From assembly GCA_964188305.1 (NCBI GenBank), contig OZ076885.1: a stretch of DNA of 64,000 nucleotides; one strand, given 5' to 3'. Below, piece by piece: positions 8,836-16,200 of the stretch. Made by a program: the position numbers and the translations under genes. The notes below the pieces were generated by a model. It was not told the origin of the DNA, ran no database searches, and worked only from the letters and a program-made list of their open reading frames with translations. The stretch's first letter is position 1; each line of letters opens with the position of its first letter. This DNA is from Podarcis bocagei. Lineage: Eukaryota.

Positions 8836-9518
8836 ATGGTGGATGGTTTCACTTTAAGATGCCAGATTTGTAACAGAACTTAGTTAGCGATCCTGGCATG
8901 TTTTGGAAGAAGCAAGCCACACTCCTGGATTGAGTCATAACACGAAGCTGCTGCCTTCCTTGTTTCTTCGCCTGATTGTGTGAAAGGAGTAATAAAACAG
9001 GAGGAGCAGTCAGGCAGTGTGTGCAGCACTATTCATCCCAAGGTTCTTCACTTGTCATTTTATGCAAATGTGCCCATTTCCTGTAAATGGAGATCTGCTA
9101 GGAAGTCAATGCCCCCCTTCCTGCATAAACTCAAGAACATAATAACATGGGAATGTGTGGCATTATGTTTGTATGCTGAATTGATGATAGAAGCTTCCTG
9201 TTGAGTTCGGGTGGCAAAAAAAAAAAAGAGCACCCGTATGCTTTACATCTTTACAAGTTACTGTTTGTCATAGTTTTGTTTTCGAAGAATCTAGACTCTG
9301 GTGGGTGAACATATTTGCATTTTTAGATCTCCTCCTTTTCTCTATATACACTGGGTTTCTGTTGTGTGATGTTTTTACTGACCATACCCTATTTGGATAT
9401 TTCTGGCTTCTTTACTTGCCTTGCCATGTTACAGATAGGTAGCTGTGTTGGTCTGCCATAGTCAAAATAAAAAAATTCCTTCCAGTAGCACCTTAAAGAC
9501 CAACTAAGTTAGTTCTTG

Positions 9519-9556
9519 GTATGAGCTTTCGTGTGCATGCACACTTCTTCAGATAC
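9519..9556 (-). ncRNA. Minimal type I hammerhead ribozyme motif (antisense copy)
   Basis: Exact reverse complement of 9583-9620. Confidence 0.75.
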
Positions 9557-9582
9557 ACTGAAGTATCTGAAGAAGTATCTGT

Positions 9583-9620
9583 GTATCTGAAGAAGTGTGC
9601 ATGCACACGAAAGCTCATAC
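9583..9620 (+). ncRNA. Minimal type I hammerhead ribozyme motif (PLE-associated)
   Basis: GUAU-CUGAAGA-A-GUGUGC(AU)GCACAC-GAAA-GC-UC^AUAC. Core boxes CUGANGA and GAAA, palindromic stem II, palindromic AGCU stem III, stem I GUAU/AUAC. Predicted cleavage is after 9616. Confidence 0.75.
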
Positions 9621-10322
9621 CAAGAACTAACTTAGTTGGTCTTTAAGGTGCTACTGGAAGGAATTTTTTTATTTTGCCTTGCCATGGTTATGGTTAGATT
9701 TCTCTATAATACATCTTTAAAAAAGTTGTCTGATGTCCGCACTCCTGTAAGATCAAAGGTGTGCTTTATGGCCAGTGTTTGGATTTCTAACTGCTTTTCT
9801 TTGTAAAGTTTAGTGAATACAGAAGTACACTATCTACAAAGCAGGTTCAGTTGGACATTCTGACTTCTACTTTGTGCTACTGTAAATTAAATAGATTAAA
9901 CTGCACCATATAAATATGTGTTAAATCCATGCAACAGTTTGAGTTGTTCTGCATTATATAATGTGCCACCTTAAGGCATTATACTACCCCAGGGGGTTAC
10001 AGTCTAAAAATAGATGCAACAGAGAAACAGGCAGGGGTAAACAGTAGAGAGAACTAATAGTGCATATATATTTGTAGGGTAGGTCATTATTAATACCAAC
10101 AATAGACGTGTGTTCATACACTAACAGAGCATTGGTGACTTGCCAAAGGCCACCTGTTGAGTTGATGGCAAACAAGGGGTGGCATTTAACAAATGTTTTA
10201 CTATTCAAATTAAAGGACCTCTCTTAATCATGTTCATTAATTTCAGTGGATCTTTTCTGAGCAAAACTTGAGCCAGTATTCAATTAAAATTTTGACTTTA
10301 GGTTGCCAATGCACCAGTATTG

Positions 10323-10770
10323 CAATGCCATTATACAAATTTATGGTGTGACTCTATTTGGAGTACTGTATGCAGTTCTGGTCGTCTCACCTCGCAAAGG
10401 ATATTGTAGAGTTGGGAAAGGTTCAGAAATATGAAAGGGCAATTAAAGTGATCAAGGGAATCGAGCGACTCCGTTGTGAAGAAAGGTTGCAGTGCTTGGG
10501 ACTTTTTAGTTTAGAGAAAAAGCGAATATGAGGCAACATGATAGAAGTTTATAAAATCATGCCTTACACGGAGAAAGTGAAGAGAGAGAGAAAAAAGTCT
10601 CCCCTTCTCACAACACTAAAATTCATGGATATCCAGTGAAGCTCAATGTTAGCAGATATGAGATATGTAAAAAAAAAGTGCTTCATGCAGCATTTAGTCA
10701 AACTATGGAACTCCCCCAGGAAGCAGGGATGATTTAAAATCGGTTGGGAATTTAAGTTGGGTTAAATTGA
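10323..10770 (+). mobile_element. Degraded CR1 LINE ORF2 3' fragment
   Basis: TTGGAGTACTGTATGCAGTTCTGGTC, TTGGGAAAGGTTCAGA, CTTTTTAGTTTAGAGAAAAAGCG and ATGATAGAAGTTTATAAAATCATG correspond to the CR1 LEYCxQFW..LFSLEKRR..EVYKIM motifs. Confidence 0.8.
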
Positions 10771-11314
10771 TGGAAAGAACGCACACTTTCACATTCTAGA
10801 TTTTGGAAATGCAGCTGGAGAAACTTCCTGAGACCTAAGTTGCTATCAGAGTAGATAGTACAGAGTTAGATGGACCAAAGGTGTGCTATAGTACAAGACA
10901 GCATCATGTAGGTGGAAGAAATTGGAGGACTAGGGTCAGATTATGCAAAATGATCTGAAGATGTGTGAAGAGTGATATGCAATAGACTTCCAATTTGTGT
11001 GCATTTAACTTGCACAATTGCAACTTTATGTGCTTGGTGGCTGGCCAGATGACATCTCACACATTAAACACATGCAGGACAGAGAGCTTAAAAGCTCTTT
11101 CCATGATGGGTTTTCCCGCCTTGCTTGATAGGCATGGCCTGCTCAGTGTGTCGGCTACAGAAAGATAGGGATGGTCACGTGAGGGCGGTTCCAGGGTTCT
11201 GAGTAGACATGGTTTGGGGTTTATGCTCAGTGCCCCAGAATGTAATGCCTGCACAAGTTAAAATAAAAAAATTCCTTCCAGTAGCACCTTAAAGACCAAC
11301 TAAGTTAGTTCTTG

Positions 11315-11352
11315 GTATGAGCTTTCGTGTGCATGCACACTTCTTCAGATAC
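11315..11352 (-). ncRNA. Minimal type I hammerhead ribozyme motif (intact, antisense)
   Basis: Identical to 9519-9556. Confidence 0.75.
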
Positions 11353-11398
11353 ACACGAAAGTATCTGAAGAAGTGTGTGTATCTGAAGAAGTGTGCAT

Positions 11399-13239
11399 GG
11401 GGACTTCCGGGATAGCGCGAACGGGTAATGGCGGATTTCCTCCGAGCTCCGGAGGGAATCGGCTCCGTCGAGGACGGGTCTTGCCGTGCCGGCGACACGG
11501 GGACCCTTAAAAACCGCAGGCGCGGAAGCCTGCGGACTTCGTGACTCGGTGGGCACCTTAAGCGCCCTCCCCGACCCGCGAAGAGCCTTTTTAAAGGCTG
11601 CGGAGTGGACTGGGGGGTGGCGTGGTGCTGAGAGTCCATCGCTACCTCGGCGGAGCGAAGCCGCGAGCCAGGACCGAAGAGCGCTATCTTTCTTCCTGAA
11701 ATTGGACTGGAAAATGAAACCCGTGAGTAGAAGGAAATTTCGGCACTAAAAGACTTTATTTTTGAATTTAAGTACGATCGGGGGGACGTGTTAAAAAGGA
11801 AGTCCACACTCCCCCCCCCCCACTAAAAGATCTAAAGCAAAGAGAGATCACTAGGTCGGAAAAGACGCTGGTGTTTAAATAGATAACTTTCATAAATTGG
11901 ACTAAGAAGTATTTGCGCTGGAGAGGAAGAGAGAGGAATTTCAGAGGTCTTCTTTTTGGGTCGACCCCCCCCCCCTAGACCCGGGAAGTGCCCTGTGTGT
12001 GAGCCCGAGAAAAAGAACAAGGAGTTTGACAGCTGTCAAAAGAGCTATCAAACGGGAGACTAAAGATTGGAACTGTGTTAACAATATCTTTTTGGATTAA
12101 AAGTGCTACATTAAAAGTGAACTGATTGGAAACAAGGTGACTGTGAACAACAAAGTAACGGACTGTTGGAAAGGAATTGATGGAAATCCCCCTGGAGGGA
12201 ACTAAAGACATTGCAATGGCTGCAGAAGGAAAAGTATGGGCGGAGATAGAAAGAATGCTTTGCCTTGTGGGAATTCTACAAGAGCACAGTACTCTTATGA
12301 GTGAACAATTGATGACCTTCAATCTTGAACTAAACAACTCTGTCGATGACACAAAGGGGATGGAAAAAAACTCTGCAGCTGCAGAAGAAAAGATAACCTT
12401 GGAGCTGGGGGAAAAAGAAGAAGAGAGAGGAGAGGAAAAGCAAGTGGAAAAAACCAACCAAGAGCCTGCAACCTTTGGAAACAAGGGAAGTAAAGAAGAT
12501 GACCAGTGGATTACAAATCTGCAGAAGGAGAGAAAGATAAAGGAAGAAGCCCCTGGAATAATTCGAATATTGGATTATAAAAAAACTGACATTTATGATC
12601 GGGACTTCTTCTTTAGGTTGGAGTTTGGGAGATTGATTGATCCTGGCCAGAAATTGCTCTTGGTTGACCTGGAAAGAGGGAAATATGAGGGGTGGATGGT
12701 AGAAGAAGAGAAGGTCAACAAAATGGACTGCCAACAAAACTGGTGGAGAGAGACCAACTGGGGCTTAAGGGCCTCGGATGTGAGAAATCCGGGCTAAAAT
12801 GGTTTCTTTTCTTTAAGGACATTGGTTTGGGAAGGGACGGAAACCGGGGAAGGGGGGAGGGGAGAGTAGAGTAGTGAAAATCTGAGATTTAGAATGGGAA
12901 TATATGATTTTTGGTTTAACATTTTAAGGAGGGAATTTGTGGGAGAGAATTTAGGCCGACTCTAGAGAAAGTACTTAATGTATAAAGCTGGATAAGCAAA
13001 ATTGGGCCAAGAAAAAGTAATAAACTTTAAGAAAAGACAAGAATAACATTTAAGAGACGGGAGAAAATAATTTGCTGAGACAATTAAGGAAATTGGAAGG
13101 TGGAAAGGGGGGTGTGGGGAAGTCAAGGAAAGAAGGGAATGAAAGTAAATTTATGAAATTATACGTGTTTTATTGTGTCTTTCTATGTTTGTATGTCTAT
13201 TAAAATGTGAAAACCCAATAAAAATTTTATAAAAAAAAA
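11399..13239 (+). mobile_element. Apparently full-length non-autonomous L1-like retroelement (~1.84 kb, no ORF2/RT)
   Basis: Starts GGGGACTTCCGG, with a CpG-rich 5' region and an A/G-rich ORF. G-rich tracts in the 3' region, AATAAA at 13217-13222, A-tail to 13239. 15-16-bp TSD TGAAGAAGTGTGCAT(G) at 11384-11398 and 13240-13254. Confidence 0.75.
12180..12797 (+). CDS. Uninterrupted ~193-205-aa ORF in the L1-like element, possibly a degenerate ORF1p (Glu/Lys-rich coiled-coil-like N-half, Trp-rich C-terminus)
   Basis: ORF track 12177-12797, with ATGs at 12180 and in the GCAATGG context (MAAEGKVW...). Located downstream of the CpG-rich 5' region, where L1 ORF1 normally lies. Confidence 0.4.
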   Translation: MEIPLEGTKDIAMAAEGKVWAEIERMLCLVGILQEHSTLMSEQLMTFNLELNNSVDDTKGMEKNSAAAEEKITLELGEKEEERGEEKQVEKTNQEPATFGNKGSKEDDQWITNLQKERKIKEEAPGIIRILDYKKTDIYDRDFFFRLEFGRLIDPGQKLLLVDLERGKYEGWMVEEEKVNKMDCQQNWWRETNWGLRASDVRNPG

Positions 13240-16200
13240 TGAAGAAGTGTGCATGCACACGAAAGCTCATACCAAGAACTAACTTAGTTGGTCTTTAAGG
13301 TGCTACTGGAAGGAATTTTTTTATTTTGACTATGGCAGACCAACACGGCTACCTATCTACTACCTGCACAAGTTGTGAGTCTACTGTACTCAAGTTTGGA
13401 AAATGATTCTAGTATTTAGAATAGCAGAACACAAAACAAAACAGGATCCAATTAGAATGGGCACCAAAATAGTGGATGAAGTTAAAATTGAAGTTCTAAG
13501 TAGCACATGTTATGGCAAGTAATCCTGGACTCATGATTTGTTTGCAAATTACCAGTAACGAGTTACTAGAGACACTTTTCTAGTAGAAAGCTCATTGAGC
13601 ACTTTTGTCTTTGCATTGCGCATTACTGTAACAGACGCTTCGGGTAGAAATAATTAATTGGAATACTATTACGTGAATCTAATGGCCACTCATATTTAGA
13701 ATGTTGTTTGCTTTCTTCTTCTTAATGATTAGAACTGTTGTTAATATACTCTCTTCAGTAGATGTACAGAGGCCAATTAAGTATCAAAGTATCTGTGTAT
13801 GGGTAGGATTATAAACTTCACTGGTTTATGAAAGAGGTTCCCCCCCTCCAGAGTTTTTAATGTACACCATGCAATAAAACTTGCCTTCCACACTTTTATT
13901 TATTCTCTCAACTTGCTTACTATATAGACCATGGAGAAAACATTACCAGCAGGTCCCCTGAATTACAGTGTCTTGTTTTAGTAAATATCTGCCTTAAATA
14001 TTCATAGTCTCAGCTATGAAACTTTCAACCTGTAGCCTTGTTTTGGTTGCTGACTTGGAACTTTAATTGTTTTAAAGATGTTCACCCTGTTTTCTGCTGT
14101 TGGTTGTATTTTGGAGCTGTTCTAAGACCATGAAGTATGCTTTGAGGCTCTGACTAATTCTTAGCTAGCTGAAATCTATAGGGGTCCACAGAGTCTGACT
14201 TACTATTCCCCCTCCCCATAATCTTGCATTGTCCTGGAACTTGGCAGGTAGTAGTTCTGATTGCACGTATTGCTCTGACTGCATGTGTGACATATTTTAC
14301 TATCTAATTTAAATGTTTGCCATCAGTATCCAAGTTGGGAATCTACTGTGTCTAACTGAATAGCTCTTGTTGAGTCATGGATCGTGCGAATGTGGCTGGA
14401 TTCTGGTCAGCTGCTTGCAGTTAACCCCATAAACCACAGTATATGTGGATAGTACACTTGTATATGAAGAGATATCACTCATTCAATAAGCTGCTGTGGC
14501 AAAGAGGTTGCTGCACTGTCGCTTGACAATTCATTAACAGTCATATTTCCATGAAATATTCACTGCATTGTTGCTACTACCCATGCCTAAAACTTATCCT
14601 GGGGTTTGTGTATGCACATGTATAATAAATAGTGAAATGGAATATGAACTCGTCTAAAGGAATGTACTTTGAAGCTTTGAAGGGTTTGTTGGTGCCTGTT
14701 AGTATGATTCATCATTAAAATTCAGTAACCTTTTTACTGACCTAGCTTCTAGGTATAGGTGCTGGCAATAGCCTGACCTCATTCAAACATCACTTGGAAC
14801 ACCATAGTTAACTATGTTTTAAATGTGAATGTACAGTGTGTTCATGCACACTGCTGAAATTATGGAAGCTTCACTCAACTGCTACTGGGAAATGAGCTAC
14901 AATCCAGTTCAGCATTTTGTCTGAATCTCCAAACAAACCGTCATTGGCAAAAGTCTCATACTAGCTTTCCACGAAATAAATCACAAGCCTGGTTTGGACA
15001 CAACACTAAGCCAAACCAGGGCTTGTTTCCCAGCAAGGGTAGGGAATGAGTGAAGCACCGGCAATTTCATACTTCCTGCATGTTCATACTTAAATGACAG
15101 TTTAATTGTAACACTGGTTTAAACTAGACCTGTGTTTTTGAGCCTTTGGCTCAGTGAATAAAACTGTTAATACGAAATCTTCTTTTAACTGGAAAGATCA
15201 TGTTGGAGGACTGATAACTAAATTATAAACTTAGGCTTGCTTCATGGGGAGGTTGCTAAGAAACTGATGAATAGTCTCTAGAGTAACCAGTTATGTGTTG
15301 TCTGGCCAGAGGCATGAGCTTGCTCTCTGAAGACTTTAGCTCTCTTGCTGGCTCATAGCTTACTTCATATCTAAGCACGCACCTAGCTTTGCATGTTTTA
15401 AGTAGCTTTACATATCTTTCTGAAATAGGAACCTCTGTTCCTTAATACTGATTCTGGAGCCTTAGTATTTAATGTTCAGCACTGTTTTTTTATAACATAA
15501 CTTGCAAAATCTAAGAAAAGATCTTGAGTTAAGAGCTAGAAAATGAGATGCTAAATTTAAAAAATTTAAATTTCTGCTAATGCAGAAACTACAGAACTGG
15601 AATAGTGTCTTCTTTTTCCAATAATGCTCAATGCTCAATCCTGCACATGCCACTTTCCTGCTGGAAATGATCCTTCTGATAGTTTTGGAAAAAGAAAGAC
15701 TTTCAGCTGGAAAATGGGATGGAGCACAGTCAATCTTCCTCCCTCTCTCCTCTTGCACCATAGTCTTGATCTGTGAGTGGGGGCTGCTCTGATCCATCAC
15801 TGGGGGGCCCTGTAGAGGAAAATAAACGGGGAATCCAAAGTATGTTCAGGCATGCTATTAAAATGATATTTAGTGGCTCTGTGCATATTGTAGAATCCCA
15901 CTGATTTCAGTGGAGCTTATCAATGTGAGCTTTAGAGTCTGTCCAACTGAACCATGACTTCAACAGACCAGCTAGGTAGATTATATGGTTAAAAGGGAGC
16001 CAAGTCTTTGCCCTGCAGATTGATAACACTCTTGTTCATCTGAGCCCAGGCCTAGAAATCCCTGTGAAAAGCAGACTGTGAGGAGATAAACTACTGCATG
16101 CACACTGGTGTTTTTCTGCAGCAAACAAAAGGAAGGCACACATCTGCTGTGGGACATAGCTGTGTACATGTAATTTGGCTTGCTGTGGGAAGTGCAAAGT

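Follow-up and report, generated by a model that had tools for sequence, protein, structure and literature searches.

The 64-kb stretch of Podarcis bocagei DNA analysed here (the window) contains a poly(A)-tailed insertion that interrupts the conserved core of a candidate hammerhead ribozyme within a Penelope-type repeat. The question is whether such a position reflects recognition of the ribozyme sequence, an effect of the hairpin that carries it, or an ordinary nested insertion.

The host repeat was regarded in a preliminary description as a Penelope remnant. It is instead a complete and recent fold-back insertion (11260–13362) with its own 12-bp target-site duplication (TSD). Its parts are listed here together with an uninterrupted sister copy in the same window.

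9429–9676, unstranded: sister fold-back without interruption, both of its hammerhead motifs intact, the natural comparator for the pre-insertion state
11248–11259, unstranded: left copy of the fold-back's 12-bp TSD (CCTGCACAAGTT), identified by repeat comparison and present as a single copy at the empty site
11260–11383, unstranded: left part of the fold-back, comprising the antisense arm, the central loop region of 16–18 nt and the first part of the sense arm; shares 99% identity with the sister copy at 9429–9676
13256–13362, plus strand: rest of the sense arm, including a 3′ tail that the antisense arm lacks, from sequence comparison
13363–13374, unstranded: right copy of the fold-back's 12-bp TSD, from repeat comparison and the empty-site contig

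A contig from a related organism (read set X5) joins position 11247 directly to 13363 and retains a single copy of the 12-bp repeat, which is the precise empty site of the fold-back. The locus thus shows the order of events: an empty site, still seen in the related organism, then the Penelope fold-back, and then the nested retroposon. Read-layout joints that skip approximately 1,890–1,995 bp were considered as an empty allele of the nested insert itself and rejected, as they derive from other fold-back copies. An intronic position of the locus in a Jagged gene is plausible. Exon support for placing the site at 11 kb inside that gene was sought and not found: the EGF/DSL exons on the plus strand begin only at 35.8 kb, with none upstream in 1–35 kb.

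Hammerhead motifs were located using a descriptor built from the published features of Penelope minimal hammerheads (PMC4209133). It identified three intact candidates in the window, at 9583–9620 (plus strand), 9556–9519 (minus strand) and 11352–11315 (minus strand), and a fourth that is split. All four have CUGANGA and GAAA cores, an extra base that separates position 9 from position 10.1, a G10.1–C11.1 pair, a long helix II, a helix I of 4–5 bp and a palindromic 15.2–16.2, and are predicted on this basis to be minimal hammerheads. The arms here share these features with the elements described by Cervera & de la Pena (2014, PMC4209133), the cores taking the form CUGAAGA...GAAA and helix I being 4 bp long; cleavage by the published motifs is weak and confined to dimers (PMC4209133). 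Motifs of this kind, together with a 3′ tail, are also on record for lizard Penelope-like elements, in the Poseidon-type elements of Anolis (PMC11167929). The arms differ from full Penelope-like elements in being 5′-truncated copies of approximately 125 nt arranged head to head. The motifs at the insertion are the following.

11315–11352, minus strand: predicted intact minimal hammerhead (GUAU / CUGAAGA / bulged A / GUGUG-CAUG-CACAC / GAAA / GC / U / C17 / AUAC), with the features of PMC4209133
11379–11399, plus strand: 5′ piece of the split sense hammerhead, with the helix I 5′ strand GUAU, C3–A9, the bulged A, and helix II's 5′ strand and loop, assigned from the intact motif at 9583–9620
13256–13272, plus strand: 3′ piece of the split sense hammerhead, with the 3′ strand of helix II, GAAA, the GC palindrome, U16.1, C17 (13268) and the helix I 3′ strand AUAC

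The preliminary description had proposed that the sense hammerhead is cut in two and that the antisense motif stays intact, and the comparison bears out both points in detail. The left piece ends at the 5′ half of helix II and has neither GAAA nor the cleavage site; the right piece begins at the 3′ half of helix II and lacks C3 and the 5′ strand of helix I, with the last A of the poly(A) tail, next to the right-hand TSD copy, standing where C3 was. The minus-strand motif at 11352–11315 is complete by the descriptor. A scan of 10500–14000 against Rfam returned no hammerhead family at E ≤ 10, an expected result because the Rfam models need helix III, which is absent from minimal motifs. MicroRNA-like Rfam matches on the perfect hairpin were discarded as false positives (mir-1 at 41 bits, under its cut-off).

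The nested insert is 1,840 bp long and is bracketed by a perfect 16-bp TSD, TGAAGAAGTGTGCATG, where 15–16 bp had been proposed.

11384–11399, plus strand: left copy of the retroposon TSD, 100% identical to the right copy
13240–13255, plus strand: right copy of the retroposon TSD, from repeat comparison within the window
11400–13239, plus strand: retroposon, 1,840 bp, the sole copy in the window; in four read sets the depth of its body exceeds that of the unique flanks approximately 20–60-fold
11400–11690, plus strand: CpG-island 5′ module (GC 65%, CpG observed/expected 1.14), with ACTTCCGG at 11403 and ATGGCG at 11428
12180–12797, plus strand: intact open reading frame (ORF) of 205 amino acids from the ATG at 12180, ending in an invariant ASDVRNPG-stop
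13217–13222, plus strand: polyadenylation signal AATAAA, 9 nt ahead of the tail
13231–13239, plus strand: A9 tail, read from the sequence

The TSD copies abut the insert exactly, from its 5′ GGGACTTCCGGG start at 11400 to the end of the A9 tail. Deleting the insert and one TSD copy in silico by script restored an uninterrupted hairpin stem, and the interrupted arm is 99% identical to the intact sister fold-back. This shows that the duplication is a genuine TSD and does not merely arise from the local GTATCTGAAGAAGTGTG tandem repeat. The pre-insertion sequence folds as a continuous stem of >100 bp, fully paired at the nick with no mismatch or structural irregularity. The nick lies 9 bp from the loop of 16–18 nt, which places it inside the stem and away from the loop, not adjoining the apex of a potential cruciform as had been suggested.

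The insert is a young, full-length, single-ORF poly(A) retroposon without reverse transcriptase (RT), and belongs to a multi-copy family of Podarcis-type lizards. Word depth in read set X1 is 700–1300 over the ORF, compared with approximately 30 on the unique flanks, and the ratios in X3, X4 and X5 are similar; read depth corresponds to tens of near-identical copies per genome, and the collapsed contigs of X1 differ from the window copy by 0–2 letters. The 5′ module is 40–100 times deeper in reads than the ORF body. At its 5′ end this copy carries 2–3 extra G ahead of the family's ACTTCCGGG start, from which several diverged, co-existing subfamilies also begin, each with the CpG-island module. 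The ending in AATAAA and poly(A) is common to the relatives, and diverged but intact relatives without ORF2 share the 3′ end of the retroposon. Logan contigs of the relatives, all approximately 1 kb long, break off at the high-copy modules of the ends and therefore lack flanks, and a metagenome scan for relatives with flanks was blank.

The retroposon's 5′ and 3′ modules can be aligned with the corresponding modules of an internally deleted P. lilfordi LINE (L009:1349–3486), and they are also common to a far more abundant repeat. The C-terminal part of the ORF in this LINE derivative matches Podarcis proteins annotated as 'reverse transcriptase zinc-binding domain', while a phmmer search of that ORF against the PDB did not reach human ORF2p. 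No full-length autonomous partner of the retroposon was encountered. Comparison with the rest of the 64-kb window revealed neither a second copy nor an autonomous LINE, and a script search for poly(A)- and TSD-bearing insertions in the window found none besides the retroposon.

The coding capacity consists of one ORF, the only one of at least 200 residues in the 64 kb, whose family-conserved start is the ATG at 12216 (MAAEGK...). It is under purifying selection (dN/dS 0.24–0.42), and the subfamily ORFs share 92–40% amino acid identity. It has no Pfam match at E ≤ 10, including to Transposase_22, and no match in a profile search of the PDB; an ESM Atlas search gave nothing usable, and a profile search over 1.8 billion representatives returned orphan relatives only. 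AlphaFold2 modelled only an N-terminal helix (mean pLDDT 44). To judge from these comparisons the protein of approximately 200 residues is an orphan in which no relationship to L1 ORF1p (coiled coil, RRM and CTD) can be detected. The earlier reading of the element as ORF2-less is borne out, since neither RT nor endonuclease is encoded and the relatives likewise have no ORF2. Its designation as L1-like holds for the ends, which are homologous to those of the deleted LINE, and for the insertion signature, but not for the ORF. Two candidate interpretations of the protein were rejected: a 2A 'stop-go' peptide at the DVRNPG-stop C-terminus, because distant relatives carry SPG or DPG there, and a relationship to the fibronectin-repeat protein P0020 found in the profile search, which is a composition artefact.

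An mRNA-like anatomy of 5′ UTR, single ORF, 3′ UTR with AATAAA and poly(A) tail, together with an ORF that has no transposon domain, might also describe the processed retrocopy of an ordinary mRNA from a host orphan gene, rather than a self-propagating family. This we consider extremely unlikely, in view of the tens of near-identical copies per genome, the diverged subfamilies that share the ACTTCCGGG start and CpG-island module, and the end modules held in common with the LINE derivative and the abundant repeat; no intron-bearing parent is known.

The closest parallel to a retroposon family of this kind is HAL1 (half-L1) of mammals, a non-autonomous, poly(A)-tailed and TSD-flanked element that retains the 5′ promoter region and one ORF and lacks ORF2. 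The lizard family is likewise multi-copy, RT-less, poly(A)-tailed and TSD-flanked with one ORF, and its mobility presumably requires L1 ORF2p supplied in trans. The two differ in host and in protein: in HAL1 the ORF can be recognised as L1 ORF1, whereas the lizard ORF matches neither Transposase_22 nor any PDB chain or named protein, and its model is mostly of low confidence.

We then consider the choice of target. The bottom-strand nick, at 5′-CTTCTTCA^GATA-3′, is a poor match to TTTT^AA, a consensus which is that of human L1 and may not be that of the lizard enzyme. It is thus non-canonical for human L1, in line with the initial remark that the target is not of the TT|AAAA type. The snap-velcro rules of human L1 (PMC3649969) would class the primer end, ...TTCA, as weak, since only two of its last four bases are T. 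Each fold-back arm has at its outer end an A/T-rich run that is more canonical, and this was left unused.

The one other genomic copy of the family examined for its target, in P. lilfordi (L009:4930–6720), has a 14-bp TSD with one mismatch. The site is AT-rich, the nearest 12 kb contain no Penelope arm, and no palindrome is visible by eye. Its nick, GTTA^AAAT, also departs from the human TTTT^AA consensus and also follows an A, so that the nick site in the hammerhead may simply fit a looser local consensus.

The position within the conserved core of a multicopy sequence, at a target that is not T/A-rich, would suit a lineage in which the retroposon or its partner's endonuclease recognises the Penelope hammerhead and parasitises the multicopy hairpins, as Tx1-clade elements do other repeats. 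The Tx1-clade L1-like elements (Tx1L, Keno, Mutsu and others) have their own sequence-specific endonuclease, and essentially all of their copies occupy one target. The likeness is limited to a LINE-type insertion within a multicopy repeat: the retroposon encodes no endonuclease, its P. lilfordi copy sits in an unrelated target (n = 1), and neither the intact antisense motif nor the sister fold-back, 1.8 kb distant, is occupied. We attach a very low probability to such a targeted family.

Insertion might instead be influenced by structure, if extrusion of the palindrome into a hairpin or cruciform, or replication stalling there, makes the stem close to the loop a favourable place for LINE endonuclease cleavage or priming at a rarely used sequence. 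The continuous stem of >100 bp, with its non-canonical nick 9 bp from the loop, would fit this explanation. The human L1 endonuclease is partly structure-driven, responding in vitro to DNA structure, ends and 'hairpin bubbles' (PMC12809410), and some influence of the palindrome on the insertion is therefore possible. Against this, pairing at the nick is perfect and there is no W–G mismatch two bases upstream, the feature identified in that study (PMC12809410); moreover, this is a single case, and the P. lilfordi copy lies in ordinary non-palindromic DNA. On balance we regard an effect of structure as unlikely, though the least improbable of the alternatives to chance.

The abundance of the host repeat points to chance. 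Fold-back arms have a read word depth of 0.5–1.6 million compared with approximately 30 on unique flanks, corresponding to approximately 40–50 thousand arms or 0.3% of a genome of approximately 1.4 Gb, and they make up 0.8% of the 64-kb window. Arms that account for approximately 0.3–0.8% of the genome should receive a few nestings per genome by chance, and the two hammerheads with a TSD-wide margin occupy approximately 40% of a fold-back. All of the junction features fit an ordinary nested transposon insertion, from which this one differs only by the coincidence that the host repeat contains a ribozyme motif. We therefore favour, with a probability of roughly 80%, a one-off nested insertion involving no recognition of ribozyme or hairpin. 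Of the three explanations originally offered, the chance event has gained support from the P. lilfordi copy in its unrelated AT-rich site, the abundant host and the regular stem at the nick, and the target-specific family has lost it through that same single copy.

On this chance reading, a short Penelope-like element would first have integrated as a 5′-truncated fold-back, with its 3′ ends outward, a 12-bp TSD and a minimal hammerhead in each arm. Later, a full-length RNA of the non-autonomous retroposon, made up of an internal promoter module rich in CpG, a single orphan ORF of approximately 200 residues, a 3′ UTR with AATAAA and a poly(A) tail, would have been copied into the fold-back by target-primed reverse transcription. 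The enzyme was probably supplied in trans by a LINE of the L1 type, dependent on poly(A), and the conserved ORF may have some role in the process. The bottom strand would have been nicked at CTTCTTCA^GATA and the top strand 16 bp away, giving the 16-bp TSD. The target would be essentially random, and the hit on the hammerhead core would reflect the abundance of fold-backs and the share of each that is hammerhead.

It is a long shot, scarcely more probable than a targeted family, that lizard LINE machinery prefers to nick the stems of long perfect palindromes such as the Penelope hammerhead fold-backs; if it did, the ribozyme hairpins of one class of retroelement would be systematically disarmed by another, or used by it as shelter. 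As a targeting phenomenon the insertion is most likely unimportant, such nestings being expected in any genome with some 40–50 thousand copies of a host repeat. Of modest value, however, are the dated order of events at the locus, in which both classes of element were active very recently, and the insert itself, as a record of recent activity in a wall-lizard family of RT-less, single-ORF retroposons that parallels HAL1 and merits description as a family.

The insert is bounded by two perfect copies of TGAAGAAGTGTGCATG and begins with GGGACTTCCGGG. Its features, and those of the Penelope-type fold-back in which it lies, are as follows.

Features of the insert and of the host fold-back
11384-13255, whole stretch, including both copies of TGAAGAAGTGTGCATG
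11400-13239 (+), insert, 1,840 bp
First ~290 bp of the insert, CpG island, GC 65%, CpG o/e 1.14
12180-12797, single ORF of the insert
440 bp, 3' UTR of the insert, with AATAAA at 13217
3' terminus of the insert, A9
11260-13362, host fold-back
11248-11259 and 13363-13374, 12-bp duplication of the host fold-back, CCTGCACAAGTT

When the insert and one copy of the repeat were deleted in silico, using a script that considers geometry only, a continuous stem exceeding 100 bp, closed by a loop of 16-18 nt, was obtained, and the restored arm was 99% identical to the sister fold-back (9429-9676), which is intact. We therefore conclude that the TGAAGAAGTGTGCATG repeat is a genuine target-site duplication (TSD), as proposed in the preliminary description. 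The fold-back centre also holds a small GTATCTGAAGAAGTGTG tandem repeat; the restored stem and the 99% sister match rule out the TGAAGAAGTGTGCATG duplication as a by-product of it.

The insert belongs to a family of retroposons. In read set X1 the ORF body has a word depth of 700-1300, compared to about 30 on the unique flanks, and ratios are similar in the read sets X3, X4 and X5. Between the collapsed contigs from X1 and the window copy there are 0-2 letter differences, suggesting that the family has tens of highly similar copies. The relatives identified by protein search are all unnamed proteins of 170-215 amino acids, with identities from 92% down to ~25%; their contigs have the layout of the window element, with no second ORF, and those that reach the 3' end all close with ...AAAATGTGAAAAYCCAATAAAAATT...poly(A). 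The multi-copy depth and the diverged relatives of the same layout argue against a lone retrocopy.

Between subfamilies, dN/dS is 0.24-0.42. The ORF protein has an N-terminal helix, moderately confident in the predicted model and conserved as MAAxGK..AEIER..LVGxLQE, and a C-terminus, RASD[VL]R[NSD]PG-stop, that is invariant in the family and has been retained, with synonymous changes in its codons, in relatives of as little as ~25% identity. Searches of Pfam, PDB and Atlas found no relative of this protein, and it therefore cannot be classified as L1 ORF1p. We infer only tentatively that this orphan protein may have an ORF1-like role (RNA coating, cis-preference).

The ends of the element are more readily assigned, using a 12-kb locus of Podarcis lilfordi (L009, in OX395132.1) that contains two retroposons.

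Retroposons in the P. lilfordi locus
L009:4930-6720, decayed family copy
L009:1349-3486, second poly(A) retroposon, ~2.1 kb

In alignments, the 5' and 3' modules of the second retroposon are homologous to those of the window element. Its ORF is 268 amino acids long, and 37% of the query matches Podarcis "reverse transcriptase zinc-binding domain-containing" proteins at 72-77% identity; we read the matching third as probably the C-terminal part of the ORF. No clear TSD was found for this retroposon, which looks like an internally deleted LINE. Because the modules align with those of a retroposon whose ORF matches RT zinc-binding proteins, the ends of the window element are of LINE type. These ends, together with the poly(A) and the TSD, support probable mobilisation by an L1-type enzyme. 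The earlier label "L1-like" thus fits the ends and not the ORF. The end modules (11400-11675, ~280 bp, and 13131-13227, ~100 bp) are 30-100 times deeper than the ORF body in all four read sets, and are common to some far more abundant repeat; the 5' module is the CpG island, carrying ACTTCCGG and ATGGCG motifs. Depth is higher at the 5' end of the element than at the 3' end, which is unusual in LINE-derived families.

The host had been described as a Penelope remnant; it is in fact not eroded and has its own 12-bp duplication. Read set X5, labelled as a different, related organism, contains a precise empty site for the whole fold-back: a contig of 3,265 nt in the read lay-out spans 11076-11247 and continues directly with 13363-13800, holding a single copy of the 12-mer, with ~1.5% flank divergence from the window. 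Insertion of the fold-back is therefore recent, and that of the nested insert more recent still. Given that the window's two fold-backs also share 99% identity, Penelope-type elements have been very recently active in this lineage. In both fold-backs the 3' ends of the element face outwards, with a ~35-nt tail on one arm only. For a Penelope-like enzyme from Anolis, cleavage and extension of both strands of the target have been demonstrated (PMC11167929), and a similar reaction could yield such head-to-head copies.

Within 13408-13666, flank differences of ~5% and a 6-bp deletion are shared between X4, which is labelled like the source-like X1, and X3, which is labelled as another organism; left-flank contigs end at 11240 in both. 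A deep haplotype, introgression or mislabelling may lie behind this pattern, and the insertion site is possibly structured differently in these two samples.

Penelope minimal hammerheads are characterised by conserved cores, one additional base between positions 9 and 10.1, a G10.1-C11.1 pair, a long helix II, a helix I of 4-5 bp, and palindromic 15.2/16.2 positions that permit dimerisation (PMC4209133, Cervera & de la Pena). A script encoding these features found exactly three intact motifs in the whole 64 kb, at 9583-9620 (+), 9556-9519 (-) and 11352-11315 (-). In the fourth, the insert separates the helix II loop from the 3' strand of that helix. The preliminary description was thus correct that the sense hammerhead is split, in what each half lacks, and in the antisense motif being intact. 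Rfam hammerhead models gave no match on the fold-back motifs even at E<=10, which is unsurprising as these lack helix III. Cleavage by Penelope minimal hammerheads is weak and dimer-dependent (PMC4209133); "disarming" the split predicted ribozyme would have no obvious consequence, since it lies in a truncated copy of ~250 bp.

The hammerhead position is most likely a coincidence (probability roughly 0.8). Fold-back arms have depths of 0.5-1.6 million compared to ~30, which would correspond to some 40-50 thousand arms occupying ~0.3% of a genome of ~1.4 Gb (0.8% of the window); these figures are rough, as word depths summed in this way do not give copy numbers. If the family has a few hundred members, or thousands together with the families that share its ends, one to several chance nestings in fold-backs would be expected per genome, and ~40% of positions within a fold-back would touch a hammerhead. 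Public contigs of relatives break at the high-copy end modules, and the P. lilfordi copy is the one further genomic copy available together with its flanks. That the retroposon lineage is specific for Penelope elements is very improbable: the TSD of the P. lilfordi copy, of 14 bp, lies in AT-rich DNA, with no palindrome by eye and no Penelope arm within 12 kb, and no insert is present in either the sister fold-back 1.8 kb away or the antisense motif.

A structural contribution of the palindrome to insertion is somewhat less improbable, though still unlikely. The bottom-strand nick at 11383/11384, CTTCTTCA^GATA, is indeed non-canonical, being a poor site for human L1 and a weak primer by the snap-velcro rules (PMC3649969), and the human L1 endonuclease (EN) is sensitive to the structure of its DNA substrate (PMC12809410). 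However, the feature identified in that enzyme's response is a W-G mismatch two bases 5' of the cut, which is absent from the perfectly paired stem here. Moreover, the P. lilfordi nick, GTTA^AAAT (L009 ~4912), likewise follows an A after pyrimidines (TTCA^GA and GTTA^AA, n=2), and the lizard enzyme may have a preference looser than, or different from, the human TTTT^AA.

The fold-back centre (11326-11405, both strands) is scored by the Rfam microRNA models mir-1 (41 bits, cut-off 45.6), mir-3149 and mir-944 owing to its perfect hairpin structure with CUUCUUCA/UGAAGAAG, and is likely to give rise to spurious microRNA annotations. Jagged-type exons occur on the + strand from 35.8 kb onwards (DSL and EGF exons at 35.8, 40.4 and 51.5-63.9 kb), and no exon upstream of these was found in 1-35 kb of the window. 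The insert brings in two sense-strand AATAAA signals upstream of them, at 13019 and 13217 (+); if the locus is intronic, premature polyadenylation is possible.

A relative is annotated in P. lilfordi (CAI5779343.1), and the family therefore belongs to wall lizards. The element is apparently an undescribed new member of the class of LINE-dependent, ORF-bearing non-autonomous retroposons, and this family is a more useful lead than the hammerhead position.
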